A stretch of DNA of 64,000 bases from Takakia lepidozioides. Lineage: Eukaryota > Plantae > Bryophyta. The position numbers and the translations under genes were made by a program. The DNA is taken from NCBI GenBank assembly GCA_030704615.1, contig CM060732.1, forward strand, positions 68,138,001 through 68,202,000, in the 5' to 3' direction. The first letter of the stretch is position 1. Each line of letters opens with the position of its first letter. Shown here in pieces: positions 8,129 to 46,200 of the stretch. A model generated the notes under the pieces. It was not told the origin of the DNA and did no database searches. It was given only the letters and a program-made list of their open reading frames with translations.

Positions 8129-11100
8129 ATGGGTATTGCAGCCGAACTGCAGCTGGGAGCTCTCCCGGCAGTGTTTTCGAAAGAATCTGCTCCTATTTTG
8201 ACTGAGAGGGGGGATCGGGTACTTGGTTTCTACGAGAGCACAGTGCGGCGGGGAGTTGTAGGTGGCCTTCAACATTGTGGAAGATGGAGGGGGAAAGGGA
8301 GATGCAACCCAGCTGGAAATTCCAGTACATTGAGTAGCTATTTTCAAGATACCGCCGATGCAGGCCCGAGAGAAGCGTCGAGGCTGCGAAGAAATGCAGG
8401 AGGCCCTCGGTCATCTGGAACAATATGTGGAGGCCGCTCAACAAGGTTTGGCGACTCTAGGTGCGGTGGAGAAGGATTTTATGTGTACAGTAATATTGAA
8501 TTTGGAAGGAGGCACCGGCCTGGAGATTCGAATGGTGGAGTCTGCTTAGGGACGGAAATTTATGCAAGGAAGTCTCGGATATTCTTTAAAGGGGAAAGTA
8601 ATGGTGGGATTGTTGAAGATAGTTGGGCTGGGGATTGCAACTCTCTTCAATTTGAGGGGGGGAGTGGGAGTGGAGGATCCAGAGGAGGTAGTGGGGGCGG
8701 AGGTGGGGACGATGGAGGGATGTTTTCAGTTCCAGATGAAGGCCCTGGCCACAGAATCACGGCAGCTCTTGTAGGAATATGGAGTGTTTTATTCAGAAGA
8801 AGAGGAAGCTTGGGTTGCTTTTTGGCACTGTCCGTTGCAGTTGCTGGGTGGTACCTCTCTCGTAAAGGAGAAGATGCTGCTCTAGCCCTTGGCTCCCCCA
8901 AGCCGGGAAAATTGGTGGATGACAAGCCCAAAGTAGCAGAGCCTGAAGCCAATGGGGAGACAGAGAGACAGGAAAGGTTGATGGGGGCAGTTTGGGAAGT
9001 ACAGGGCAGCCGCTGGAGACTGTTTCTGCCGGATACTGAAAGGGACGTGTATGTGTTAGACACGGTTAAGCAGAGTGAGGAAGAAGCCCGGGCATATGAA
9101 CGTAGTTTTGTAAACGAACAGGGGGGACCCGTGAAAGAGGGCGAGGAGAGAGAACGAGGAAGAGGCGTGAATATTGAAGGAAGGTTGAAAAGGGTTGTAG
9201 TGCGGTGTGTAGAGCTGGGGAAGCAGATAATGCTACCCCAGGGCTACCCGGGAAGTGTAACAGAAGATTATATGGAGTACACTCTTTGGCGGATGGGCCA
9301 GATTATTGCCAGCCAGATTAATGGGGTTCTTACCACGCAGGTCATTATCTCTTCCTGTCTCTCAAAGGCAATGCTGTCTAGTATGATGACAAATCAAGTT
9401 TCAGGCAATGTTTGGGTTTGATTGTTCTGTGGTTTTGGTGGTTCTAATGTGTTGTGCTACTAGGTCCCTTGGGCCTTCTAGACTTCCAGTGAAATTTATA
9501 TTTTTCTTTCCTTCTCTTCTCTCTCTCTCACTGTGTACATGACGAACACTCTTATGTAGATGGTCTTTGTACTGACAGAGTTTGGCAGCTTTTCACCAAA
9601 CCCCTAAGCCCTTATTTCCCACCTCTCTTGGCTTAAGTGGAATCACAGTCTTGGACCTTCGAGGTTTAATTTTTCAATAATTGCTTTGGCAGGCATTACT
9701 GTATGCTGTGGGGTTAGGAAAAGGTGCGATTCCAACTGCAGCAGCAGTAAACTGGGTGCTCAGAGATGGCATTGGTTATTTGAGTAAAATAATGCTGTCG
9801 AAGTATGGACGTCACTTTGACGTGCATCCCAAAGCATGGAGATTAATGTCAGATGTATTGGAGAATGCTTCATACGGCTTGGAGCTTCTCACACCCACTT
9901 TTCCCCATCTCTTCGTTTATTTGGCAGCTGCAGCCGGGGCAGGGCGCTCTGCTGCAGGTCTCATTCAGGTATGCATGCTGTGGAAGTAAGCTTTCAAATG
10001 ATATCTGGGTCTATTTGCTATCTGCTCTGGTGCACCCTTTATATTGCATTGGAAGTTTGGGATGATGTTCCTTGAACGCAAAGATATTTGTGTGTGCAGG
10101 CTGCTACTAAGAGCTGCTTCACTGCAGGGATGGCAGCACAACGTAACTTTGCTGAGGTAACAACCTGGGTCCACTCTTTCACTTCAGAATCAATATTGTC
10201 ACATTTTGGTTAGTGACTAGAGGATCGTGGCTCCCTGCAACTCAAAGGTTGTCAGTTCTGTCAGGAAGTTTTCCAGCTGTGCCTACCCCTTGTGCCCATG
10301 TAGGGACACAAGGCCATTGCCAGCACTGTCCACTTTAGTTTCGCTTGTCCTCTTTTTTCAAGCCGATTTTCAAAGTCCTCCAGTGCAACTTTTCCACTGT
10401 TTACCTTGTGGCCTCTGTTAAATGGGGACTGACATGTTTGAATGATGTGTAGTTGATAGCCAAAGGGGAGGCACAAGGTATGGCCAGCAAGTCAGTTGGC
10501 ATTGCACTGGGCATTGCAGTGTCCTCCTATGTGGGCAGCTCTGGTCCGCTGCTGGTGTTCACATTCGGGGTGGTGACAGCATTCCATATCTTCTGTAATC
10601 TCAAGTCATACCAGGCAGTGCAATTGCGTACCTTGAACCCGTACCGTGCAAGTGAGTCCTCTCTCTCTCTCACTCTCTGTGGCCACAAGGCTACGGTAAA
10701 CAAAGTCTTATGAGTACATCTCACCCTCTGTGTTCCCTTTTGTTCCACGCAAACTGGGCACGGGGTCCATGGCCACAAGGCTACGGCAGAGTACATTCTG
10801 TATTGAAGTTAGGCAAATAATATCCCTGAGCTTGTTGCCAGTTTGTGACATGGGTTAGGACCGCCTACCTACCCTCGGCACTAGACTATTTTAAAGTCAA
10901 GGAAGGGAGTCTACCTTTGAACAATAGACATATGCAGAGAGGAAAGGGAGATTGTCAATGCCTGATGTGCAGGCGCCCTGAAGGCAATATCCATTTTCTG
11001 ATACTTTGTCCAGAGTATACTCGGCAGAGAGCGACCCTCTTGAGGGCCATCACAAGCATAGTCCTTGAACCTCTGTTCACCAACTTTCAAATCTCGAGGC

Positions 11101-15030: not shown

Positions 15031-15119
15031 GGGCATGACAATGGTGAGGCGGACAAGTGACCCAAGGTCTAGCTAGTGGGGCTTCAATGTCATGGATACT
15101 CAACTGAAGATCATGGATT

Positions 15120-16390
15120 GTATGAAGGGTAGAAACGTCGAACACTTGGCCTATATCCCCCTCCACGTATAGTGACGTACCTCAATGTGTCTCGGTGTTG
15201 GGCAATAGCAAGGTTTTCAAAAGCCATAGGCATGACTCTCTTGAACAACTCTGCCCATTGGGCACATGCTTGTGTCCACACATCCGGATCATCAAGGTTG
15301 AAAACTATTGCAGCCTCCCTGCGAATAGATGCAGGCAAATCCGGCTCTCGGCCGAAGAGAAGAAAGTAAGGTGAGAATGAGGCAAGTGAAGCTTGTTTGC
15401 TGAACCTATAGCCCATAGCTAGCCAAGGCAGTTGAAGGTCCCAATCTCCTAGGTGTCCCTTCTGCAAACCGTACTTGCGCAAACTTCTCTTGACTGTCTG
15501 AACAACTCTCTCCGCCAAGCCAACAACCTCGGGATGATCCCGAGAAGTAGTGCGGTGATCTATCAAGGCTTGCTCACACAAAGCTTGAAACTTCCCCAAA
15601 AACTCTCTCCCTTGGTCCGTGAGTACCTCGGCTGGAGTACCAAAATGGCTAAGCACTCGATCTAAGAATGCATACGCAGCCCCCTCACTTGCCTTGTCAG
15701 GCAATGCCACCAGTTCAATCCATTTAGAGAAGTGTTCCACCATCACCAGCACATACTTGTTGTGGCGAATCGTCAATGACAATGGGTCTGCGAAGTCAAG
15801 ACTCCAACGATAGCCCAAACCCATAATGGGTAAAGGATGCAATTGTGGAGTAGGGGCGTTGAAAGAAGCCCACACTCTATCACACACCATGCACATTGCC
15901 ACTAACTGTTGCACATCCGTGTGCATGCCCTGCCACCAATATTGCCATTGCAGCAAACTATGAGTGCGCCGCATCCCAAAATGTCCCAACTCCTCATGGG
16001 CATGGCGTACCAATCGCGCTCGTTGTGTTGGATGAGGCACAATCCTCACTCGTTCATCCTCCCATACCCGGAGTAGGTGAGTCCCCTCCCACTTGAACCT
16101 CTTGGCTCGTTGTAGGACCCGATCCCTCTCCTTAGCAGTCGCACTCGCTGTTGTCTCTCCGGTACGAAGGTATGCCAACACTGCTGCATCTTCATGCACA
16201 TCCTTAGCACCACCAAACTCCTCACTAGTCTCTGGATCATCATGCACGCTATCTACATGACCAATCGCATGGGATGGACCAGCTTGAGCTCCCACTGCTA
16301 GAATGCACAAAAAGGCCGATGCATGCCATCCTGGCACCATCTCCTCATCCGTCTCACCATGTCACCGAGCTCCAGTATCATCAGCTCCAG
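15120..16390 (-). mobile_element. Ty3/gypsy integrase fragment (no LTRs seen)
   Basis: HHCC zinc motif (HEELGHF...CMVC), WSLDF, LTDQGREF, GLAERVVQTVK, SPYFLLFGR. Confidence 0.93.
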
Positions 16391-17652
16391 TAACTTCTTC
16401 TTATACTTAATCCGACAGTCTATCTCTAGTACCATCAGCTCTAGCAAGAATGAACAGCTTTCAGGTGTGGGATTCCTCAGTTTCGGTGCAGAGATATCAG
16501 TCATGACAACCAGTGCATCTTCCATAGAGGAATATGATTCCATAACAGACGGATCAAAGCTGAATCCAATGAGCGTTTTTTTCACCTCAATTCTTGTCAC
16601 ACTTACCTGCCCTGCACGCATTAATAACTCTAATACACGGAACCTTGCACTCATCTCGTCGATGGCAACCATCATTGCAAAGCTAACATGCACCATTTAT
16701 TCTGGATACTCACTGGCCTGTCTCAGCTCATTGAAAGCTGAAGCCATGAAGTGAAAGTCATGAATGGGGCCTCTACTAAGCTTAGCAATAATCAGGTGCA
16801 CGTCATGTCCTGCTTCAAGTGCATCCACATCCCATGGATAGAAAGGGAATTCATTGCGCTGGTATGCAACATGCTGATGTTTTCGTAATTCATTCAGAAC
16901 ATATTGAGCATGCCGTAATGACCAGAATACATGGCCGACCCACTGCAGAAGTTCGGCTTTCGCCTTCTCTGTGAGCACCACATGATCATCTGCCTCCTCG
17001 TCATAACCCTCAAGCAGGCGAATATAGGCCTCTGTTGTCAACTCCATGTTCGCCAGAAGGTCCGTTGAGTATTAAGCTCCAAGAGCAACCCAAATGTGCT
17101 CAAGAGACTTGCTCTTGCCTTCTTTTTTCTCTCAGAAGCCATACCGCGAGCAGTTATCTCAATTGCACACATTTCCACCAACCAGCTGATCTTCCGTTCC
17201 AGGTTATCATGGAGGTTTTCTTCATACAAGAGTATCGACTGCTCGAATGTCTCAAAGTCCTCTATCATGATCCTCGGCTGATTTGCAAAAAAGTATCGTT
17301 GTGTTGTGCACATGGGAAGCAATTGGTGAAACACCGCAAGCAGAGTCTCTTGTACACCTCGGGCAGATTTTTTAAGGCGATCTGACGCTTTCAATTTCGG
17401 CAGCTGTACTTGAGAACTCTTCAGAGTCCTAGCAGTGGCAAAATAAGTTTCCCTTTGCATGTCCAGCCATCGTTTGGCCAGGAGGGTGCTCTCAGGATCT
17501 TCATGATCGACAAGAACTGGGTACTCTGGTTGACCATTTTCTGGAATCTCAAAGTCAAATTGATAAAAAGCGTGATCTAAACGGCAATCATGGCAGACGT
17601 CTCGCCCATGCCCCTCACAGTAAGAGAGGTTGTTGCAGGTAATTGTTGCCAT
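16390..17652 (-). pseudogene. Decayed orphan ORF (~420 aa) with an N-terminal CxxH-x4-CxxC motif, truncated by the gypsy fragment
   Basis: Three consecutive ORFs joined by one frameshift (~17040) and one in-frame TAA (16697-16699); YCEGHGRDVCHDCRLDH; helical composition. Confidence 0.6.
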
Positions 17653-18354
17653 ACCAGGTAAAACCTACTTCCCTCGAGCAATCAGGAGGGGGATAAGATA
17701 GTTGCATACACTTCTTTTCTACACCTTTTCATGCACCTCTTTTCTACAATGTAGAGGTCTTCTCCCTGCCTGGTTAAGTGGAGTCCAACTGCCTCACCCA
17801 CAATGCAAGGTGACCTGGCACATAGCGACGTGCCACTTGTTGTTCACTTCAGCTTCCGGAAGTATCCACAAGTCAACACATCTTACGAATTAACTGAGAA
17901 ATGCTCTCTGCATCATACGGGCTTTGAGCCTGTCACACCAAATTTGCATTACAAGTCAGAGAGGAATATTCACCTTAGAATTCACAGAAGAAATCTCCAG
18001 CATTAATAAGTGAACCCGACACAAACATTGCTTTTCAACTGAATGCTAAAAAGCAACCATCATGAGTGGGTGCGATGCATTTCAGTGGAAAAGTCCTCCG
18101 AAGCTCATTACCTCTCAAAACAAATATGCACACTGCAGAAAGTTGACTGCAATGCTGAAACCAACACAAAGATCGTTAGTGGAGGAGGAATGACCTAAAG
18201 AGGTAAATATGTTCTAAAAGAATGGCCCCTTCAATACTCCTCACTACAATGCTTTGCAAATCACAGTAGTTCCGGTTGTACTCATAATTCAAGGTTTCCA
18301 TTTGTCTCGGGCGAGCCAGGACGCGTTGAGGGGCACAAACTGTTTTTCTTCGAG

Positions 18355-18450
18355 CAACAACACATTGAAAGCCTGAACATATCCCCGAATATCATCTGTT
18401 TGCTTCAAATTCCTCATCCTCCCAAGACCTCTCTCTCGCCGCCATAGCTC
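18355..18450 (-). mobile_element. Small retrotransposon gag-like fragment
   Basis: MRNLKQTDDIRGYVQAFNVLL resembles the Retrotrans_gag LxxLKQ..V..Y...F motif. Confidence 0.45.
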
Positions 18451-18647
18451 TAGTACTTGGGATGGAGAGTGGGTGAGATCTATATGGTGGAGTCATTTAG
18501 CAAAGGTGCCATTGGCTTGACTTATATAACGTGGTAGAGTGGTTTCTCATCTTTTCACCATTTTCGTATCATTGTGGCATGGCTTTCTAGGACTATATGC
18601 TAGGAAGTGTGGTTGGACAGCGATGTATGTTGTGGCACGATGCTTAG

Positions 18648-19412
18648 GTGCACGACACTTGTATCAATCATAAATATATTTTCAAGCCTACTCTGCTTTG
18701 GAAGGGCCGCGAACGATCTTTGCTCTCCTCTGAAGTTGCCCGCAGAATTGAACAGAGGCTTGCAGTTCAAAAGAAGAAACGCAAGAAAAAAGCATCCGTC
18801 TCTGGGCCTTCAGGTTGGGAGATTGGAGACTTAGCCGAAGCTCGAAGGGTGCCAGAAGAGTATTTTGTTGACCCACGGTTGTTTTGGGCTATCGGGGATG
18901 GATCCGTAGAGCGATATGAGCTGCCAACTTTTCACGAAAAGATCAAGACACGAAAGAGCATTGCTACAGGTATTGAAGCAAGTCCAACCTCTGTCCACAG
19001 TCCACCATCTACTGTTGTTGAAGAAATGCCATCTCTTGTGCCTCGCTCTTTAAATCAACTAAAGGAAAGTGATTTGACCACACGAGACATATTGTGGCGG
19101 AAGGTGAAGGGTCTAGTGAGGTGGAGCAGCCTGGAACAGTTTTTGACTCGGCTTGGTTGTAGTATACTCAGTCTGGACGGGTCTAGGAAGAAAGTGGTGG
19201 ACAGCCACACTGGTCGCTGCACTGTTCTCCACAAGCCACACCCTAGTGAGGAATGTCGACGGGATCAACTAGACAATTATCGAATACATTTGGAGGATTG
19301 GTTGCATATTAACTATGAGGATCTGATTACTACTGATGAGGTGACCCCAGAGAGCAGAAGTACAGACGGGGCCTTTGACTCTTCCAAAGATGTGGAGAGG
19401 GACCCGATTTAG
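18648..19412 (+). CDS. ORF or terminal exon with a C-terminal HicA-like (mRNA interferase fold) domain
   Basis: VRWSSLEQFLTRLGCSILSLDGSRKKV...TVLHKPHPSEECRRDQLDNYRIHL matches the HicA pattern W-x2-hE-x-hh-xxLG...GSR...hHxPHP; starts at GTG after TAG, so the 5' end is missing or spliced. Confidence 0.6.
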   Translation: MHDTCINHKYIFKPTLLWKGRERSLLSSEVARRIEQRLAVQKKKRKKKASVSGPSGWEIGDLAEARRVPEEYFVDPRLFWAIGDGSVERYELPTFHEKIKTRKSIATGIEASPTSVHSPPSTVVEEMPSLVPRSLNQLKESDLTTRDILWRKVKGLVRWSSLEQFLTRLGCSILSLDGSRKKVVDSHTGRCTVLHKPHPSEECRRDQLDNYRIHLEDWLHINYEDLITTDEVTPESRSTDGAFDSSKDVERDPI

Positions 19413-19739
19413 ATACCAGCATGACTATACTCTTCATCAAGTGTAGCTTGTTTGAGTGCAATTTATCTGACTCTACAATTTGAACATCAGACATGTAACT
19501 GAGTATAGATGCATGTCTGCATAGCAAGCATCAAAGCTTCTTGGACATTTTGTGATTCCTTGAAGGGGCCGATACCTTCCTTGTTTCCAGGCAGTGGTCT
19601 CTGAGGAACTAAGGAGCAACCTTTTAGGCCGTTGAGAACTTGATAGGCTTTCAAGAATGAGATGCTGTCAAGTGTTGATGGTTTTAGACAGACAGCCTGA
19701 AGAAACACTATAGAATGCCATACACCGTCACTAATTTCT

Positions 19740-20650
19740 TATACCTGTCTCCTCCATCATTCACCTTCTCCATATCGTCCCACCTGCCAGCAGCAGCATA
19801 GCTATTCGATAGAAGCACATAAGAGCCTCCATACCACACCCATGCTGTGTATATCCTGTGATCATTGCATTCCATAAGACCACATTTCATTGACCCATAT
19901 TATCAAACACTTGATGTGCATCTCTTATGCCCCCACATTCGGCATATATGGCTCAAAGGGTAGTGGGCAGAATGATATCTGGCAATATTCCAGCTTTTGT
20001 GATGTCTGCATTGACCTCTTTGCCCTTGCCCAAGGCTCCTAGGCTGCCACACCACCTTGGGAATGCAAATGAAGTAACTTTGTCAGGCGTCACCCCTTCC
20101 AGTATCATTTTCTCAGAGCTCGAAGGCCTCCATAACACACCATCCTGAGCATATTCTGCCATCATTGTCCATGTAAACACACATCTTTTAGGAATTCGCC
20201 AAACACTAGGCGTGCATCAACCATGCTACCACATTTGGCATACATGTCGGCAAGGGTGTTCAGCAGAAAGGTGCTTGGCTTGAGTCCACTCCGTAGATGG
20301 TGGGAGTGCACCTGCTCTCCATTTGAAGGTTATCAATTTCGATGCACTGCTGCAAGAGCGAGATGTAAGTATTTGTGTTCCTTAAAAATGTTCAGCACCT
20401 CTTTGAGTTAACCGGCCTTAAATAGTGCCATCACATCCCCACAAGAGTTTTTTGACTTCTTAACCAGACTGCTCGACCATGTATCATGGCAGCTAGTGCT
20501 GCGTTCACCCACGGCAGGCTCAACCAACCCTCAATCCAAAGGGCCTCGTTAGAATGCTTATGTCTGAAATTCTGGTGACCTTGGAGTTCTCTGAAAACCA
20601 CCAGTGATCAGTTGAGCACTCGTAGCTTCAACCAAGGCCTCGGACAGACA
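19740..20650 (-). pseudogene. PLS/E-class pentatricopeptide repeat (PPR) pseudogene
   Basis: Frameshifted NTLADMYAKCGSM-DA-VF, WTMMAEYAQDG, GVTPDKVT, E-domain SYVLLSNSYAAAGRWDD. Confidence 0.8.
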
Positions 20651-25300: not shown

Positions 25301-28190
25301 ATTCCTGCAAAGCAACCAACATCTTTTGTTATCTCGAAGAATAGGCTGGAAAATGAAACATGGGGTGGGTTTTAATCGTTCCTGGAGTGAATGGATGACT
25401 GGGGGGGGAGGGTGGTACATTTGCTTCAGGGACTGCCGGGGGTAGAACTTCAACTGCTGTCAGCTCTTCTTCCACCGTTGGAGGTTGTTCTTGAGTGATC
25501 ACTTCCCTTGGTGCCGAGACACTTGATGATGAAGAGGCTGAAGCCATCGGTGGAGGGCGTTCACCATTGATGTAGTCCCTGGTCTGCTGAAGTTCCATTT
25601 GGTGATTTTCCTCTTCCCTGTCTTGTTCCAGGCGTCTCTCCAAGAGCATGAAGGCAATCCTGAGGGAGTCCCTGGTTCTGATTTGCAGCCCACCAGTGCC
25701 CCAGGCTCGAGACATAATAGCCTCATTGACCCAAAATTGCTCCTCTGGTGCGGGTGCTTGATAGATGTCTGCCTCTTCCATGAGGGCCAAGACTTGTGTT
25801 GATGGTTTGGAGGTTAAACCCGGGTGATCTTCCCTATATGCTTCCCATGTGATGTTGGTTGCGGCCGAGAGGTGGTAGTGTTGAAAGTGGTTGGTGAAAA
25901 AATCGTATATTTTTCTTTTTATGATAAGGTCTGGGTGGCTGCCTTTTGGGCAGGTTTGCATGAAGGATCTGATGTCCGAGGATGTTACCCACAGGGATTC
26001 CGGACATTCTGGGTTTCCGGAGGTCATTAGGAAGGATGGATGAACTCTGTTTCTGAATATTAAAGGTGTCACACAGGAGGCCTTGGGCTCATTGTCGGAG
26101 ATCAGTTTTGAGTAGCTTGCGAGAGCTAGCTTGGGGAAAGTTTGTAGTTGGAGACATATCCTTGCCAATACAGGGTTACTGGCAATCCCAACCGTTCCCA
26201 GTTTACTGGCAAAAACTGGCCTGTTTCTCCTTGCACCAAATGTGGTTTGAGTACCCTGTTGCAGTTTCCAAAGGGAGAGTCCTTTTCCTTTGTACGTTGT
26301 TGTTTAGTGTGTCCCTGCCTTGATCGTGGGATTCCAGCTTCCAGCTGCATTGGGTCTAACCCCCTCTTGGCGTGATTTGGTGGTGGATTCAGCTTAAATG
26401 GGTCCTCCATGTTTGTGTTAATCTGGATCCCAGTTTTGGCCCTTTGGATGGGCCTACCTGTACTCGGTGATAACTGTACCGGCGATTGGCCTTCTTCCTG
26501 CGGACGGGAAGGAGTTGAGTTCCCCTGCTTGTATGATCTTTTCTTTTTCCCCTGTGGACAGTTAGCTTTAATATGGCCTTGCATGCCACAGTTAAAGCAT
26601 GCTGATGAAGTAGCGTCTTCAACCAGTCTTGTAGTAAAATAGTTGCCTTCCTCGTCAATGGGAAGGCGCACAAAGTTCGGGAGAGTGTCCTCGTCAGGCA
26701 TTAACAAGACCATCTTAGGGAAACCACAATCATTGAGCCTTGAGGCAATGGTAGCTGACTTCCATGCTGGATTTTGCCTTATAAGTTCTGTATTCATGTG
26801 TGGATCAAATACTCCAATGCATCCCAGATATTTGCCAAAGTGGTTGGCGATATCCGGCAAATTCATAAAATACTGATCAGGAATAAATGGAAGTGAAACT
26901 ATCCGTGGCCCCCATAGCTTATCATTCTTGTGTCCCATTTTTGAGGACCAAGGAAATATGTTTACATTGAATCCATGGACATGGGGGTTGAAGTTGAGGG
27001 CTTTGGCTGCAGCTTCTTGAGTTTCAAATTGAATAGAAAAGAAGCCCCTGCCCCTTGCATGGCAGGATTGCTGCTTTAAGTCACCTGAACCCCCATGTAT
27101 CTGACTGCCCAGTCTCTCACAAAGGATCTACTAACCTTTTTTTCCGGGGAAGTGTACCAAAATTCCGAGATCTTCCATATCCATGGGGATGAGAGGGTAG
27201 TCTCCCTGGAGCGCCTCCTGCGTGGATAGAAGGTCTGAAAGGTCAATTGTGATGTCTGGGTCCTGTGAATGTCCTTCTAGCAGCTCTGGGTTTGGTACTG
27301 GGCTTCAATTTTGTAGGTAGGTTGACGCGTTTGTTGTCGCATTGGGAAGGAGGTTCGGATGCTGCCTCTGCTGACCTTCGAGACCTTCCCCGCTGTTGTC
27401 CATCTAGGCTGTAAGTCGATTCCTGGGTTGCCAAATGGCTGTGCCTTCATGAACATTACGACCCCTCGATTGTGCCTGGTGGGCTTGGAAGTATCCTATA
27501 CCCGAGGATGGAAGAGGGCGCTGTTGATGTCGTGGTTGTATCTGTGGCTGACCTCTCCCTCTGCCAGAGCTCTGACCGCGAGAGTGGAAAAAAGAGTTGG
27601 GAGTCATTGTACCGGCTGAGGAAAGCAAGTGCTAGAGACACTTGGAGCTGGAATGGTTTGCGGAGCGAAACGGGTCTGTAGTCTAACCGATCACTATGCT
27701 TTCAAGACTAAGCAAACCTTCACATTGAGACTTTACCAGGGGTGCTGGACGTTGGCTGTGGCAATGATAAGGCAGTTGCGTGGGAGAGCTAAGCTTAGCT
27801 GTTGGGGGGGGGACATGAATCGTAATGAGATGACAGTGAACTTTGATCGAGATCATAAATGGTGACGGCCATCAGCCAAAGGCCTAATCTTCCCAAGATG
27901 AAAATAGAATGAAAATAGCCAGTTAGTACTTACTCAGGATGAAGGAGTGATGAAGCTCCGAGGGGTTTTTGGGGTAAGTTTGGTCAGGGAATAAAGATTT
28001 GCTTGGGTTCAAAACCCGTTGCCTGTATTTCTGAAGCCCTTAAGCATCTGATGTCTTCTTCGAAAACTTGAAAAACCCTGTTTAGGCCTCGCTGTGGGTG
28101 GAGGAGAGAGACGAAGATACCGTTGCGGTTTGCTCTCCTCTCACCGCAGATCGCGGAGCTCCCTGGGCGCTCCATCAATTCCCTTTATGT
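22330..28190 (-). mobile_element. Degenerate L1-clade LINE with an internal deletion of most of EN and the RT core
   Basis: ORF1 GRGFFSIQF (DUF4283-like) and CFNCGMQGHIKANC knuckle; EN start SWNVR/IIFLQEHK (~24890-24770) fused to post-catalytic RT FCQASRFKVNWGKT; SWKQICLPKKKGGLG; ESQEHCLLYC; LWHLWKARCKRTF. Confidence 0.88.
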
Positions 28191-31269: not shown

Positions 31270-32856
31270 CTAAGCATTAGGACTTCTGCTTCGTTGGCTT
31301 CCCAAATCTCCATGGAGCACTTGCTTTATGACAATGTTAATTTCATCTTGGTAGCGCTTGATGAAAAACCATATCTCGCTGACACGTTCACGGTTTCGTT
31401 GAATCATGTAGCCAATGCCCTCATCGTAAGTTCTTTTCCGTAATGCTTCCTCATTCTTGACCCTGATATCTTCTGCTTGATCCATTGACAGTCCATGACA
31501 GTCTTTTGATGCCTGAATGGAATTCATAAACACGTCTTTGTCCTTCACCAACTTGCGGGCCTCTTCATTCTCGACTTCGTCATCTGCATCATTTATCGCA
31601 AAGTGATCCATAATGACTGACGATGTTACAGAGATGACTTCAGAATATCTGTTCTCAGCCATTCTTATGGCCCCATAAAAGTTAGCAAAGTGCTGCTTGT
31701 CAGCATCAATTGTGGTGAAAAAAGCTTCCTCATATTCATTCCACAAGGCATTGACTTCTCCATAAGTCTCAACTTCTATTTCAAAAAGCTTCTCTTGCAA
31801 CTTGTCAAGCTCATCTAGCATGGCCTTCAATTTTGGTTCTGCTGTTGTGCGGTCTTGCTGACATTCTTGAAACACCTTCTTCTTCCGTTTGTGGAAGGCT
31901 GTGCAAAGTGTACGACCTTCACTATCTCTTTTCGCAAGTACCTCTCTCCGGGCAGCTGCATGGAGCCTTGTCTCTTCCTCCCGTATATTGTGGAGTTCCA
32001 CTATGGCATTCTTACAATCCTCCGCCACAATCAGGAACCTTTCTTTATATTCGTTAAAGGCTTCGTTGATCAGATTGGGTACAGTAGATAGGGCTTTATG
32101 CTCAGGATCCGCAGCAAGCATGGTATCAAAGAATTCATCGATTCCTAGAAGATTTGCTTTTGCAAAGAGCCTATTCTCAGCCTCCTTGGCTACGCGCTCC
32201 TTCCAAGCAATCTTCTCTTTGTTCTCTTTGTCCCGCATCTCTTGAATCGCATCTTGGTATTGCTCCCTTGCCTGCTTTATCAAGTTTGTGAAACAAAGGT
32301 GATGATCAAGATACAAAAGGGCCCTCATAAATGCGATTGTATAGAGCTTATACTCCGGGTCCTTGCAACATGGGTTGCCTTCTAAACACAGCAACCGAAG
32401 GTTTCGGAATTGTCGGAGATACATGACTTTATCCAGGTCTTTGATTGAGTTGTTTCCAAGGGAAAGGGACTTGATCTCTTCAAGCTTGTCAAGGCCCTCA
32501 ATAGTTGTGAGCTTATTGTTGTACAAAGACAGGTCCAGCAACCTTGTTAACTTCTCCAGGCCTTCAATCTTTTCAATGTTGTTGAATGATAAATCCAATT
32601 CTGTTAGAGTAGTGAGATGGTCTAGTTTCTCTATTTTGGAAAGGTTATTGTTGTCAAACTGCAACCTTGTCAGATGCTCGAAGCCAAGTAAATAGTCAAC
32701 TTGCTTGATTCCTCTGAAAGAAAACTGGAGCCAGGTGACAACTTTAAGAGGCAACGCTTTCCTCCGTTCCTCAAGCCCCTCCCCTGATGTCGCTTCAATC
32801 TGGATAGACGATCGAAGGACATCAGAGGTGATAGCTTTGCCTTCCATCATCATCAT
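31270..32856 (-). CDS. DRC3: Dynein regulatory complex subunit 3 (LRRC48), intronless, 528 aa
   Basis: N-terminal SDS22-type LRRs (LDLSFNNIEKIEGLEKLTRLLDLSLYNN, LSLGNN, YLRQFRNL..L.LEGNP), then coiled coil ending ASKDCH...RNRERVSEI typical of DRC3. Confidence 0.85.
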   Translation of the reverse strand: MMMMEGKAITSDVLRSSIQIEATSGEGLEERRKALPLKVVTWLQFSFRGIKQVDYLLGFEHLTRLQFDNNNLSKIEKLDHLTTLTELDLSFNNIEKIEGLEKLTRLLDLSLYNNKLTTIEGLDKLEEIKSLSLGNNSIKDLDKVMYLRQFRNLRLLCLEGNPCCKDPEYKLYTIAFMRALLYLDHHLCFTNLIKQAREQYQDAIQEMRDKENKEKIAWKERVAKEAENRLFAKANLLGIDEFFDTMLAADPEHKALSTVPNLINEAFNEYKERFLIVAEDCKNAIVELHNIREEETRLHAAARREVLAKRDSEGRTLCTAFHKRKKKVFQECQQDRTTAEPKLKAMLDELDKLQEKLFEIEVETYGEVNALWNEYEEAFFTTIDADKQHFANFYGAIRMAENRYSEVISVTSSVIMDHFAINDADDEVENEEARKLVKDKDVFMNSIQASKDCHGLSMDQAEDIRVKNEEALRKRTYDEGIGYMIQRNRERVSEIWFFIKRYQDEINIVIKQVLHGDLGSQRSRSPNA

Positions 32857-40244: not shown

Positions 40245-43200
40245 ATGTCAAACGAGAAAAAGATGGATTTGTATGCGCAGGAGCCACCAAAGCGCGCGGA
40301 AATTTACACTTACGAGGCACCCTGGCTCATCTATGGCATGAATTGGAGCGTCAGAAGGGACAGTAAATTTCGCCTTGGAATTGGCAGCTTCATCGAAGAT
40401 TTCAAAAATAAGGTGAAGCCCATCTCTGTACGTGTAGTGTCCTAGGGTTTAATTACAGCACAGAAACTTTTCCATCCGAACGTTGGCTACTTTGCTTGTA
40501 CGATCACGATGCAGGGCCAGCCGTAGGGTCTTAACATTGGAGTTATGAAGCTTGGCCATATATTCACAGAGATGTGGGTGACGATGTGGTTACATGTGGT
40601 TCAGCCCCATAAATCTCGCACTGAACAACGATGAGTTTGTTCCGAGTGCTGATACTGTATGCTTCTACCCTGATTTTGGAGGTAATTATACAGTCCTGAG
40701 GTGTAATACAGCTCTTAATTGAGATTGTGCATGCAGGTGGAGATTGTTCAACTGGATGATGAGACAGGCAAGTTCATGGCCGATCCCAAGCTTTCGTTCG
40801 AGCACCCATATCCGACAACCAAACTCATGTTCATCCCCGACAAGGAGGGGCAAAAGCCTGACCTTATGGCAACCACAGGAGACTTCCTGCGCATCTGGCA
40901 AATTCATGAAGACAAAGTGGAGCTTAAAAGCTTACTCAACAACAATAAAAACAGTGAATTTTGTGCTCCCTTGACTTCATTTGACTGGAACGAGTTGGAA
41001 CCCAAAAGGTTGGGAACAAGCAGTATCGACACCACCTGTACCATATGGGACATAGAGAGGGAGGTTGTCGACACACAATTGATCGCTCATGACAAAGAGG
41101 TGTATGACATTGCATGGGGAGGGGTGGGGGTTTTTGCATCAGTATCAGCTGATGGTTCTGTTCGAGTATTTGATCTACGGGATAAGGAGCACTCAACCAT
41201 TATCTATGAGAGTCCACAGCCGGACACCCCTCTTCTCCGCCTGGGCTGGAACAAGCAAGATCCACGTTACATGGCTACAATTTTGATGGATTCAACGAAG
41301 GTGGTGGTTCTGGATATTCGATACCCCACTCTGCCAGTTGCTGAACTCCAGCGACACCAAGCATGTGTCAATTCGGTGGCATGGGCCCCACACAGCTCTT
41401 GTCATATTTGCACGGCTGGGGATGATTCACAGGTATGTGGTGGCACCCTCCCACATTGTGGAGGGAGAACAAGATGTGTGCAAATTAGAAAAGTAACAAA
41501 AAGAGAGCGACATAGGGGAGGGGCTGCGGTAGCCTTTTTGTGATGAACTTGAATGTATAAATTGGACAGCAAGAATGTTGTCAGCAGACTGTGCTTGTGA
41601 TAGATAGCCTCTCCCTCTCGGGTTCTCTCCTTTGTGTTTTACTGTGTACTGTTCTAGTTGGTTGTACTCATAGGTTTGGCTGTAGCCTGTTGTTGGATGG
41701 ATTGTTCTTCAACTTGAAGGAGTTCATGAACTTTTCCTTTCGCTAGAGGGGGTTGCTGTAAGTGTATGTGGCTGTGAGGAAATCTAAGGCCGATCAGATT
41801 GTTGCCCGGGCTTTTTCGAGCTGTCAAGAGGTGGCATAGTGATGAAGCCATTACTTGAAGGTAGTCTGAGCCAGCCAGGATTCTCTAAATCCTGGTCCAT
41901 ATCTTAAATTGTATAGGTTTTTAGTTGCAGTCTTGAGTGAGCAGGTTATGCCTTCTCCAAGTTGCAATGTAGTCTTTGACATAATGCCTAGGAATACTTG
42001 TCCATATTTACTGTCTGGAGGAAATCCACAAGTCTAGACGAGGTAAGCCCGTGGGAGGGTAAGGGGCCGATGATTAAAACCAATATTTGCTACTCTTGAT
42101 GGCTATTTGCCAACTGATTACAAATATTACCACTAAGATCAATGAGGCCTTGTAATGTAACGGAATTGCTTAGTTGGAACTCCTACGAACAGTGGATGAC
42201 ACACGAATGAGGGTGAGAAATTGTGTCAATCGTACAATGAGGGACTGTGAAGAAGAGGTTAATGTGTAGCAGGGTCTAGCTGACTTGCTATCACCATGAG
42301 TACCAGCGTATACTCCTGTGTGGGTAGAGAGAGATTGTACTCATAAGACGTTGTTTGCCGTAGCCTTGTGGCCATTGACCATGTGGGTAGAGAGAGAGGG
42401 AGAGAGATAGAGTGTGTGTCTGTGTGTGTACTCATAAGATGTCGTTTGCCGGAGCCTTGTGGCCATAGACCCTGCGCCCAGTTTGAAAGAGAGACAGTAC
42501 TCTTGAGATGTTGTTTGCCATAGCCTTGTGCCATAGACCTGTGTGAGAGAGAGATAATGTACTCTCAAGACGGTATTTATCGTAGCCTTGTGGCCATAGA
42601 CCCTGCGCTTAGTTTGAGAGAGAGAATGTACGCCTAAGATGTTTGCCGTAGCCTTGTGGCCATAGAGAGAGAGAGAGAGAGAGATTGTACTCATAAGACG
42701 TTGTTTGCCGTAGCCTTGTGGCCATTGACCCCGCGCCCAGTTTGAGCGGGAACAAAAGGGACAGAACCTACCTCTGTCAGGGGCTGACGTTGGTAGTGTG
42801 ACTTACCATCATATATAGAATTAATCCGGGTTTTCCAGATATCCTCTAGAAATCCCTTCACACAAGCATCAATCTGCTGTGTGTGATTTGCCCAAAAACT
42901 AGGCCTCAGGAGGGCCTGGGCTTTTGGCTCAGCCTCGAGACTTTCAAAGTTGTTGAACAGGGGTACAGGCACAATTCCCTTGATAGAGTTGAAGAGAGCG
43001 GTCTCTTTGGTGAGAGAACCCCGGACAGTGTATCAGAAAGTGAATACTGCCTTCAGATTGCCCACAAAGCGGGCAATTGCACTCTCCCTTTCCTCTCTGC
43101 TTCTGTTTGCTGTTCGAAGGTAGGCTTCCTGCCCTGAGTTTAAATTTCAGTCTAGTGCCGAGAGTGGGTAGACCCTTGAGGTCATCCAAGATGTCCTCCC

Positions 43201-46200
43201 CCATGTCACTGACTGGAAACAAGTTCAGGGAAGTTTTCTGCCTAACTTCATTTTCATCAGACAATCTCATGGCAACAGACATGGCTGAGGACACTACAGA
43301 CTCTAAGTCAGATTTATCCAGCAGGGTCAAGGCTTGCGGATCCAGGTCCAGGTCCTTGAGAATCTCTTCTACTCTCTTCTGCCCGGACTTAGCCTGTTTG
43401 ACAGGGCGGTCCTGTTTCCAAGATATAGAGTCGATTAACTTAGGATATCTGGTGTTGGGCATATGTTGCAGCTGACCCCACCATCTGACCTTGAATTCAT
43501 CTCGTCAGGAGCTTAAGGACGGAATGCCAAACTCACCCCGAACAGCCACATTGGCTGTTTTGGAGCATGCTGACATACACTCCTTAAGCACCCCCACTTG
43601 AATGGATTCTAGAGACTTAGCCTGGTTGGAGTTATCAACCCATATAGCAGATCCGTACTCCAAGGCAGGTCTAATAACGCGACAAAGCATGGTTTTCTTA
43701 ACCTCAGAGTTGACCCCTCTGCAGTGGAAAATTTAGTGAGCCCCAGAGCTTTGCCCTTGCCAGTTTGAACAACTTTCCGGATATGTGCATCCCAATTACA
43801 ATTGGAGGAAAACTCAACGCCCAGGTAAGTGTAGGAAAGGAGGACCGGGATCTCTTGGCTACCCCACTGCCACTTAAGATCACTTCCTCCCTCTCCTCTG
43901 TCGTTGAATGCTACCACTGCACATTTGCTGACATTAGCCTCTAGCCCCCAAAGATCAAAGTATCTCTTCGTGTAATCAATCAACTCCTGGAGATTGGTTG
44001 GAGTCTCCCCTATGCCTGCGAAGTCATCCGCAAACATAAGGGCTGGTATGGTGGTATCACCCACCCTTAACCCAAATCCCTCACTTTCCACATCCTCGAG
44101 GAGTTGATTGAAAACATTGAAGAGCAGAGGGGAGAGAGTACATCCTTGAGCTACACCTTGGTCTATGTCAAAGAAGTTGGACTTCTGTCCGTTAACAGTG
44201 ACACAGCTTTTGGTGTGAGCATACAAGTTGTGGACAACTCTCCACATCTTTCCCTTGATCCCACAAGACCAGAGGTGGAACCATAGGCCATCTCTCCACA
44301 CTGTGTCATAACCCTTTTTGACATCCAGGAAAAAAACATAAGTGGGTTTCCCTTCTTTTTTCCTTCCCTGGATAATCTGGCTTAGAGTGAAGATATGATC
44401 CACACAGCCCCTGTTTCGCCGAAAGCCAGTTTGGCCTTCGTGGAAACAACCTCTAGACTCCAGATCAACCTCGAGACGAGTACTTATAACTCTGCAGAAT
44501 GTCTTGCCAACAGCATTGAGGAGCATGATGCCACGATAGTTCCCCGGTTCTTCTCTGTCACCCTTCTTGTATAGATTGACAATGACCCCCTGTCGCCAGC
44601 GAAAGGGGATCATTTCAGTCTTCCAGATAAGGTTAAAGAGGAGAACTAGGGCCTCTATCATGGGATCGCCACCGTGCTTGATAAGCTCGTTGACAATACC
44701 ATCAGGTCCACCAGCTTTATATCCATTTAAATGTTCAATTGCTTCCACAATCTCAGAAGAACTAATGGGAGCATTATAAGCCATTGAAATATACTCTAGT
44801 TCATCAGGGCTGTTTTGAATCATAGGAACAGTTTTTCCAACTGTGTCCCTCCATTCAGCAGAAGACCCCTCACTGTTAGACCTAGAAGTTCTGCCAAGGA
44901 TACTGTAGTGAGTTTCAATGTCAACCGATGAAGTCACCACTGCACCTTTAGTAGTCTTCAGCGCTTGTACTTGCTGACCGTTTTTCGGCTTGTACAAACG
45001 TTGAAGGGCCAACCAGAATTTCTTGTCATTACCACCATGGTGGTTTGAGTTTATTTCACTGTATAACTTGTCCCAGTATAATTTCTTCTGAGACCTAACA
45101 AGCTGATTGATATCCTTACGGAGCTGGTAGTACCTCGCCCACAATTCTCTGTTGGTTTCCAAATTGCAGCACTCTTTATAGAGGGCTCGTCTCTCAGCTA
45201 TCTTGAGTTTAATCTCATTGGTCCACCAATTAACTGCTCTACCGCAGACAATTAGTTTCCTCCCAATGATCTTGTCAGCCACGGAGGAAACGAAACTCTC
45301 CCAAGAGTCCACTGCTCTTTCGACTTCATTTCTTGCGTTAACAGAGCGTGACTGAAGTTCTTGGAGCGATTGGACAAAATGAGGGAGAGCCTCTTGCAAG
45401 GCCTGGACGTACTCAGCCTTGACCTCCTCATTGCATCCAGAGCATCAAACCGATTAGAAACTCTCAAGTTGAAGTCGTTGCCCTTGGTTGTCTTCCTAGA
45501 GCGCCCCATTGAATCACCAATGTCTAAGACCGCTCTCCAGCCAGTCAAGGGACGAACTTCTTTGAGATTGAATTGATGTGGGACTCTATTAGAAGCACTT
45601 TTGGTCATTGCAACCTTCAATGTACCCCTGTTATCAAGTCTCGAGATGGTACCATTAGCCATGAAATCCAAGCCTAAGCTAGAGCATGTAGTTTTAAACG
45701 ACACATCGTCCATCCTGGGATTCACCCCAAAAACTACACATGAAGCCCTAGATTTGGCATAAGTAACCAATTCCCAGGGATCACCCTGAGGAGTGTTGAT
45801 GTTGATAGGAGCTAAACTTTTGATTGTTCTCGCAGGCTATAAGTTTAAGCACAGGAACCAACCCGAGCCCGAGTATGCTAGACAGAGCATACGACTGCCC
45901 AATTTGGGCGGAGGGGCTGCCCCCAAGCGGTAGGAGTCCGCTTGTTACCATTCAGAGATCACACTCCAGGGAGTTGCAGGGAATGGCCCGTGTAGGCATA
46001 TTCTAAAGAGGGAAAGGCCCCAAGCTTTCCAACTAAATCCAATGCACTACCTTACCTGAAGCAAAGCGCTTCAGGTCGAAACAAACAAGGACACGAGGTC
46101 ACAAGGCCGGCATTTAGTCACAGAGACATTAATGTACTCCCGTATCAAGTCCACCCAATGTCAATAGGCTTCCTAGAGGACAGGGAGAGAGAGAGAGAGA

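Follow-up and report, generated by a model that had tools for sequence, protein, structure and literature searches.

The open reading frame (ORF) at 18648-19412 (+) of the window, i.e. the whole 64,000-nt stretch of the Takakia lepidozioides genome that was analysed, is with a probability of about 0.85 the C-terminal third of a pseudogene, a copy of a conserved eukaryotic gene with a single exon, and this copy most likely makes no protein. The domain at the C-terminal end of the ORF is a true homologue of the HicA family, by profile and by fold. The interest resides in the gene family that is indicated by this locus; the object in the window would be a dead, split copy, neither a terminal exon nor a working effector.

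The ORF has 254 codons. Its GTG start is mechanical and an ATG is absent, and the first 10 nt fall inside a high-copy repeat that ends at 18657. The preliminary description of this DNA had already noted the missing ATG and considered a broken gene, and both points were borne out, the start of the ORF overlapping the repeat. The residues quoted there, including KKKRKKK and EKIKTR, are indeed read from the ORF; the domain as quoted starts at 19110. The following features were found in the ORF:

18696-19412 (+), C-terminal third of the gene copy, stop codon included, equivalent to residues 456-689 of the Ceratodon protein P0005 (BLASTP, tblastn)
18771-18791 (+), K-rich tract KKKRKKK, a poly-K run that is kept across the family (alignment)
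18936-18953 (+), EKIKTR motif, which precedes the HicA domain and is kept in members from liverworts to chytrids (alignment)
19044-19325 (+), HicA-fold domain of 94 aa (Pfam, AlphaFold2, structural alignment, hhalign)

The C-terminal third thus comprises the K-rich tract, EKIKTR, a Ser/Pro-rich linker between EKIKTR and the conserved block that starts near 19044, and the HicA-fold domain. The KKKRKKK tract is possibly a nuclear localisation signal. Residues 17-247 of the ORF are 63 % identical to residues 456-689 of P0005 over 235 aa (BLASTP), and because it aligns with this region, the ORF represents the last third of a protein of about 700 aa.

A HicA-type domain had been proposed from the letters alone, and this was substantiated by Pfam, by hhalign and by AlphaFold with structural matches. 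Pfam HicA_toxin (PF07927) matches residues 159-208 of the whole ORF with an E-value of 2.5e-4 and the domain alone with 4.2e-5. With 21.5-24.0 bits the ORF is below the gathering cut-off of 27 bits, but all four close homologues from public data that were scanned match the same family (best E-value 6.5e-7), and one of the Marchantia paleacea proteins (P0043) clears the cut-off with 31 bits. A precomputed PF07927 match is on record for P0003; an NCBIfam scan of the ORF gave no match. A profile search of 1.84 billion representatives returned 35 proteins at E <= 0.001, which fall into two sets: long proteins of 473-800 aa, in which the match is C-terminal, and short proteins of 75-137 aa. All ten of the short proteins that were scanned pass Pfam HicA_toxin, with 33-48 bits. 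Alignment of the eukaryotic domain profile with the bacterial HicA set by hhalign gave 99.4 % (E-value 2.3e-21, 77 columns), a figure that is somewhat circular since the bacterial set was chosen by similarity to the plant profile; the Pfam membership is independent of this choice. The joint alignment of eukaryotic and bacterial sequences shows little or no variation in a Trp, a Gly, Gly-Ser and His-x-Pro-His. The preliminary description named a HicA subfamily with GSR and FHRPHP, and according to the alignments the domain belongs to this subgroup, with GS-R/K and H-R-P-H-P. Sequence searches of the PDB yielded only noise with a 4-sequence profile and a marginal HicA match with a 32-sequence profile (E-value 0.03).

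AlphaFold2 models the 94 residues with a pLDDT of 96.2 and the element order H-H-E-E-E-H, that is an extra N-terminal helix followed by alpha-beta-beta-beta-alpha. Gly-Ser-Arg opens beta2 and His-Lys-Pro-His-Pro closes beta3. The dsRBD-like fold, a three-stranded sheet with two flanking helices, is evident from the model and from its PDB matches. In a Foldseek search of the PDB a Thermus HicA homologue came first and E. coli HicA third; the E-values, 0.13 or worse, are weak, as expected because the domain is so small. Structural re-alignment with VIA put five HicA chains at the top, with Z-scores of 7.1-4.2: Thermus TTHA1913 (1whz; Z 7.1, rmsd 2.5, 67 aligned), E. coli HicA (6hpb_A; Z 6.5, rmsd 1.9, 57/57), Burkholderia pseudomallei HicA (6g26_E; Z 6.1), Yersinia pestis HicA3 (4p78_C; Z 5.0) and again B. 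pseudomallei HicA (4c26; Z 4.2). The first unrelated chain (4jpd) ties with the fifth HicA at Z 4.2 and the other unrelated chains have 4.0 or less. Thus, a HicA-like fold and homologues with GS and HxPHP, as anticipated, are both present, the one in the AlphaFold2 model and the other in the joint alignment.

The remainder of the gene copy is also in the window, but on the opposite strand, where it is flanked by repeat sequence:

17047-17652 (-), first N-terminal piece, which corresponds to residues 6-201 of P0005 and comprises the Cys/His-rich N-terminus, with the ATG at 17652, and the first part of the helical domain (tblastn, frame -2)
16383-17050 (-), second N-terminal piece in another frame, equivalent to P0005 residues 201-425 (tblastn, frame -1)
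17653-18285 (-), low-copy 5' flank of the N-terminal half, between this half and the repeat, with a read depth of about 43 compared to 1e5 in the repeats
18286-18657 (strand not assigned), high-copy repeat fragment adjoining the C-terminal half, with a depth of 3.6e4-2e5 and many contigs that diverge at 18657
15111-16382 (-), truncated piece of an LTR retroelement with an integrase ORF (Pfam Integrase_H2C2 and rve) and a depth of up to 2.5e5

With tblastn, residues 6-201 of P0005 were placed on 17646-17047 in frame -2, residues 201-425 on 17050-16382 in frame -1 and residues 456-689 on 18696-19388 (+). Taken together, the searches with P0005, P0041, P0042, P0043, P0044, P0007 and P0008 cover 17661-16346 (-) and 18648-19400 (+); the gene pieces were searched one by one and never merged into a single sequence. 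These pieces share a single strand and are collinear in two loci (L004, and L005 from Ceratodon) and in a third from Diphasiastrum (L007), whereas in the window they are on opposite strands. The N-terminal half carries lesions of its own: its reading frame shifts at about 17047-17050 and is interrupted by a TAA at 16697-16699. At the break, about 25-30 codons of family sequence are absent, and about 50 nt are missing in comparison with L004 and L007. A functional member would have one uninterrupted ORF on a single strand; the window copy does not have it.

Both breakpoints adjoin repeat sequence, which is why a repeat-associated rearrangement is indicated. Such a rearrangement would have turned round the N-terminal two thirds together with the 5' flank, which now face the C-terminal third head-to-head; some 25-30 codons would have been lost at the break, and the N-terminal half would have gained the frame change and the stop codon afterwards or would have had them already. 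Neither a simple inversion between two copies of an element nor capture by an element fits all orientations, and no single clean path was derived. Inverted or direct repeats that would explain the inversion were not found within 10-24 kb, and the window has no other copies of the two flanking repeats.

Public sequencing runs of the same species were compared over 16000-19800; X1 and X2 are DNA, X5 and X6 are possibly RNA. The read depth is 1e4-2.5e5 over 16000-16400 and 18286-18666 but only about 43-130 over the gene pieces. The position 18657 is regarded as the end of an element because many contigs diverge there. Copies of the repeat 18286-18657 differ by a unit of about 117 nt, as seen from joints in many contigs that go back from 18418 to 18302. 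A gag fragment had been guessed for this repeat from a short motif; its one short ORF gave no Pfam match and the guess was dropped. The LTR-retroelement piece on the other side is cut internally at 16382, where it adjoins the end of the N-terminal half, and other copies of it run on past this position (loose ends at 16382/16383).

X1 and X2 hold two variants of equal depth, one identical to the window and one divergent, and three paired contigs of the divergent variant differ from the window at 19/266, 13/227 and 17/224 positions. In X5, a contig joins 16392 to 18692 on opposite strands, which corresponds to the collinear form of the gene. This contig differs from the window at 22/237 positions and therefore belongs to the second copy. 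The species thus has a second copy that is about 5-9 % divergent and whose halves are collinear. Among the listed short-read contigs none bridges 16382-16392 or 18657-18692, both junctions lying beside high-copy repeats, and the inversion itself rests on the assembly.

In the preliminary description the AG acceptors at 18590 and 18647 were taken to suggest that the ORF is a terminal exon or belongs to a broken gene. A functional terminal exon of an expressed gene that is spliced at one of these sites and encodes an active HicA effector would be in line with the 254 open codons, with the AG dinucleotides at the named positions and with exact low-depth contigs of X6 over 19367-19519. We consider this very improbable. 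The coding sequences of the orthologues are single-exon in Ceratodon (2073 nt) as well as in Marchantia paleacea (2403 nt), so no splice acceptor is expected ahead of the ORF. The residues that precede its homology start are found inverted 1 kb away, the sequence at 18286-18657 is a high-copy repeat and the N-terminal half is itself broken. The suggestion of a terminal exon has to be replaced by that of a copy split by an inversion beside a repeat and damaged further; its tail may be transcribed to some extent, in view of these contigs from a run guessed to be RNA. It is unlikely that the head-to-head arrangement is an assembly error at the repeats and that the real locus is collinear, with the point lesions kept. 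Both junctions are beside sequence of 1e4-1e5 depth and no listed contig crosses them, in favour of such an error, but an exact contig in X1 and X2 covers 17664-18331 and supports the junction of 5' flank and repeat as assembled, the sole collinear joint that was seen is that of the divergent second copy, and the window lacks about 50 nt of gene sequence that L004 and L007 have.

The gene pieces could also be cargo of an LTR retroelement, the N-terminal half with its 5' flank having been caught between the integrase piece and the other repeat and then spread by the element. This half and the integrase ORF are both on the minus strand, the half is bracketed by high-copy sequence, and decayed copies exist in other samples (L003, L004). 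However, the gene pieces do not share the copy number of the element but are low copy (about 43 per variant), and the codon at which the N-terminal half ends is nearly the one at which the C-terminal half begins, which speaks for one broken gene more than for independent captures. Moreover, intact orthologues are on chromosome-scale contigs, where the called neighbours at the Ceratodon locus have no family match on record and the Marchantia gene has no called neighbours. Cargo is likewise unlikely. As for the domain, it is hardly conceivable that it matches HicA by chance, or as a generic alpha/beta module of dsRBD-like type, without being a homologue. The ORF score below the Pfam cut-off, the weak Foldseek E-values and the marginal sequence match in the PDB would agree with this, but each of the proteins in the hhalign comparison passes Pfam HicA_toxin, P0043 is above the cut-off, and the near-invariant Trp, Gly, Gly-Ser and His-x-Pro-His are in common with bacterial HicA. 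In addition, the top five structural matches are all HicA, the best four with Z 5.0-7.1 compared to 4.2 or less for unrelated chains. A pseudogenised copy of a eukaryotic gene with a C-terminal HicA domain is the reading that we prefer.

In other respects the window is usual for plant nuclear DNA, with many retroelements. Pieces of a PLS-type PPR-like ORF follow the HicA ORF closely, in several frames at 19708-20311 (-), and the read depth rises over 19683-19800; they are either a decayed PPR gene or frames of one gene. Other ORFs with Pfam matches are at 8129-9421 (+), 31270-32856 (-), 40719-41543 (+), 43609-45399 (-) and 26126-26938 (-), and the matches are to UVB_sens/RUS-type, LRR, WD40, reverse transcriptase (RVT_1) and zinc-knuckle gag sequences.

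Members of the family were found in seed-free plants and in a chytrid:

Ceratodon purpureus (moss), KAG0628316, hypothetical protein of 690 aa (profile search)
Ceratodon, chromosome 10 paralogue of 739 aa (word search)
Marchantia paleacea (liverwort), Mapa_006348 and Mapa_010793, two proteins of 800 aa and 715 aa (profile search; word search)
Riccia sorocarpa (liverwort), R1sor_014864, hypothetical protein (profile search)
Diphasiastrum complanatum (lycophyte), O6H91_04G015700 (word search)
Pteridium aquilinum (fern), transcript for 688 aa (profile search)
Nowakowskiella (chytrid), KAJ3128943, 473 aa (profile search)

Intact family proteins have a size of 690-800 aa. An alignment of 12 sequences revealed a short Cys/His-rich start, a long conserved region, the poly-K run, E-K-I-K-T-R-K, which is also present in the chytrid, and the HicA block. 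The model of the full-length Ceratodon protein of 690 aa (pLDDT 71) is all-helical from 58 to 486, disordered from 487 to 573 and has the HicA fold at about 574-667. The helical domain thus has roughly 430 aa, and the poly-K run and EKIKTR are placed in the disordered linker. A Foldseek search of the PDB with this model matched the helical domain to generic helical bundles only and to nothing meaningful. Most family members have Cys-x2-His ... Cys-x2-Cys at the very N-terminus (about 17600-17640 (-) in the window). This could be a small zinc knuckle, and the model, which is of low confidence here, has two short hairpins. The pieces in the window are collinear in similarity to the hypothetical proteins of seed-free plants and the chytrid over the helical domain, the poly-K run, EKIKTR and the HicA domain, with 45-68 % identity to the plant members. 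In contrast to the window copy, which is split, inverted and damaged by a frame change and a stop codon, most of these proteins are encoded by intact single ORFs.

Copies in various states of decay were seen elsewhere. The family gene in Diphasiastrum complanatum (L007, CM055095.1, 4818-6820) changes frame at about 6290, in the A-run of the poly-K tract. The annotated protein has only 436 aa and no HicA domain because of this change; the domain is encoded just downstream in the other frame. Either a homopolymer error or a real frameshift would account for it. L004 (Logan SRR33208215, 403-2283) is a decayed copy with four frame changes and L003 (JGI 3300013314, 2118-2456) is another, with deletions inside conserved motifs. 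An ORF of only 93 aa on a 17-kb contig from ENA (P0012) groups in the tree with the plant domains and not with bacterial HicA; it is probably another plant-derived fragment.

A small tree of 93 columns separates the eukaryotic domains as one group from bacterial HicA with 93/95 support, its inner order being unreliable. Among the named matches there is no seed-plant member; many matches are nameless. A word-based protein search with the family alignment returned only close plant members and was probably swamped by poly-K words. The preliminary description had also mentioned a similar module at the end of large fungal proteins. This was confirmed at the sequence level by the chytrid protein and, for Ascomycota, at the level of structure only. 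Three Ascomycota clusters of the ESM Atlas (468, 851 and 916 aa) superpose with the domain model on 93/94 residues (TM 0.83), residues 520-671 of P0005 have their match at the C-terminus of large Ascomycota proteins, and in the 468-aa cluster PF07927 is found in 26 % of the members. These clusters resemble the family in predicted structure and language-model features only. The N-terminal part of the family matches clusters named 'Ipa protein' in the same resource (score 0.84). Homology of the Ascomycota and 'Ipa protein' N-terminal parts to the family would be a lead only. The single exon and the range over fungi and early plants are compatible equally with horizontal transfer and with an old ancestry followed by loss.

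The RNase activity of the HicA toxins studied so far depends on a histidine in beta2 that immediately follows Gly-Ser (PMC7180214). By profile alignment, residue 24 of B. pseudomallei HicA is the counterpart of the residue after Gly-Ser. The window has Arg here, most family members have Lys or Arg, and the others have another residue. The end of beta3 carries a near-invariant His, which precedes the universal Pro-His by two residues. The domain thus lacks one defining feature of the characterised HicA enzymes, yet is a clear homologue, and the term 'RNase' may be wrong for the whole family, the classical catalytic His being absent. The defence or cell-death role and the horizontal origin that were considered in the preliminary description would be hypothetical, and so would RNase activity. 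A HicB-like partner was not found at the window by Pfam-level screening, where the neighbours are repeat pieces and PPR-like ORFs. The same holds for the orthologue loci: at the Ceratodon locus no family match is on record for any other called gene, and at the Marchantia locus no other gene is called. In intact members the HicA domain would bind RNA through its basic face; cleavage, if any, would proceed via the invariant His pair (H-x-P-H) and not via the classical beta2 histidine; and the helical domain may target or restrain the HicA domain. Of these, RNA binding is the safer assumption and cleavage by a relocated His pair is possible. A complex prediction with the helical domain of P0005 and its own HicA domain scored 0.00, which is evidence neither way. 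One could imagine that the intact members are HicB-less eukaryotic RNases derived from bacterial long-form HicA, that they use the relocated His pair and are restrained by the helical domain until infection or stress triggers them, and that the gene, having passed between fungi and early land plants, disappeared before the origin of seed plants. Such a scenario is doubtful.

A HicA domain 'not described in plants', as stated in the preliminary description, is correct as far as the literature goes: searches for HicA in eukaryotes, plants or fungi, for the orthologue accessions and for 'Ipa protein' found nothing relevant. It is not correct for the protein databases, which already hold intact orthologues as hypothetical proteins, some with a Pfam HicA match. 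A survey of HicA genetic contexts from 2024 covers prokaryotes only, and the literature treats HicA as a prokaryotic toxin-antitoxin and anti-phage module. Here, a large protein that is kept in plants from liverworts to ferns and also present in fungi ends in a conserved HicA unit, with no antitoxin partner and with the catalytic residue changed. This eukaryotic use of the unit is apparently undescribed. Should the intact proteins be able to bind or cut RNA, they would offer a testable case of a bacterial toxin domain that was recruited to RNA metabolism or immunity in eukaryotes; genetic work is feasible in mosses and liverworts. The locus in the window makes a smaller point: copies of the gene are duplicated and decay, and an ORF that resembles a stand-alone toxin-like gene can be left behind by a rearrangement associated with repeats.

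The closest known relatives are the bacterial long-form HicA proteins (PF07927, about 75-137 aa, P0013-P0035). The whole unit of about 85 aa aligns with them, including the extra N-terminal helix, and those with Gly-Ser-Arg and Phe-His-Arg-Pro-His-Pro have the Trp, Leu-Gly-Cys, Gly-Ser plus a basic residue and His-x-Pro-His-Pro in common with the eukaryotic domain. The replacement of the beta2 His and the His at the end of beta3 are also common to this subgroup and the eukaryotic domain. In the ESM Atlas, a cluster of bacterial HicA-HicB proteins matches the domain model with a TM of 0.79. Bacterial HicA is paired with the antitoxin HicB. The long-form proteins are small and stand alone, whereas the eukaryotic unit is the C-terminal end of a protein of about 700 aa. 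The HicA toxins of solved structure (6hpb, 6g26, 4c26, 4p78, 1whz) have the same fold, with Gly-Ser and Pro-His in register, but they carry the catalytic His of beta2 after Gly-Ser where the window has Arg and the family Lys or Arg.
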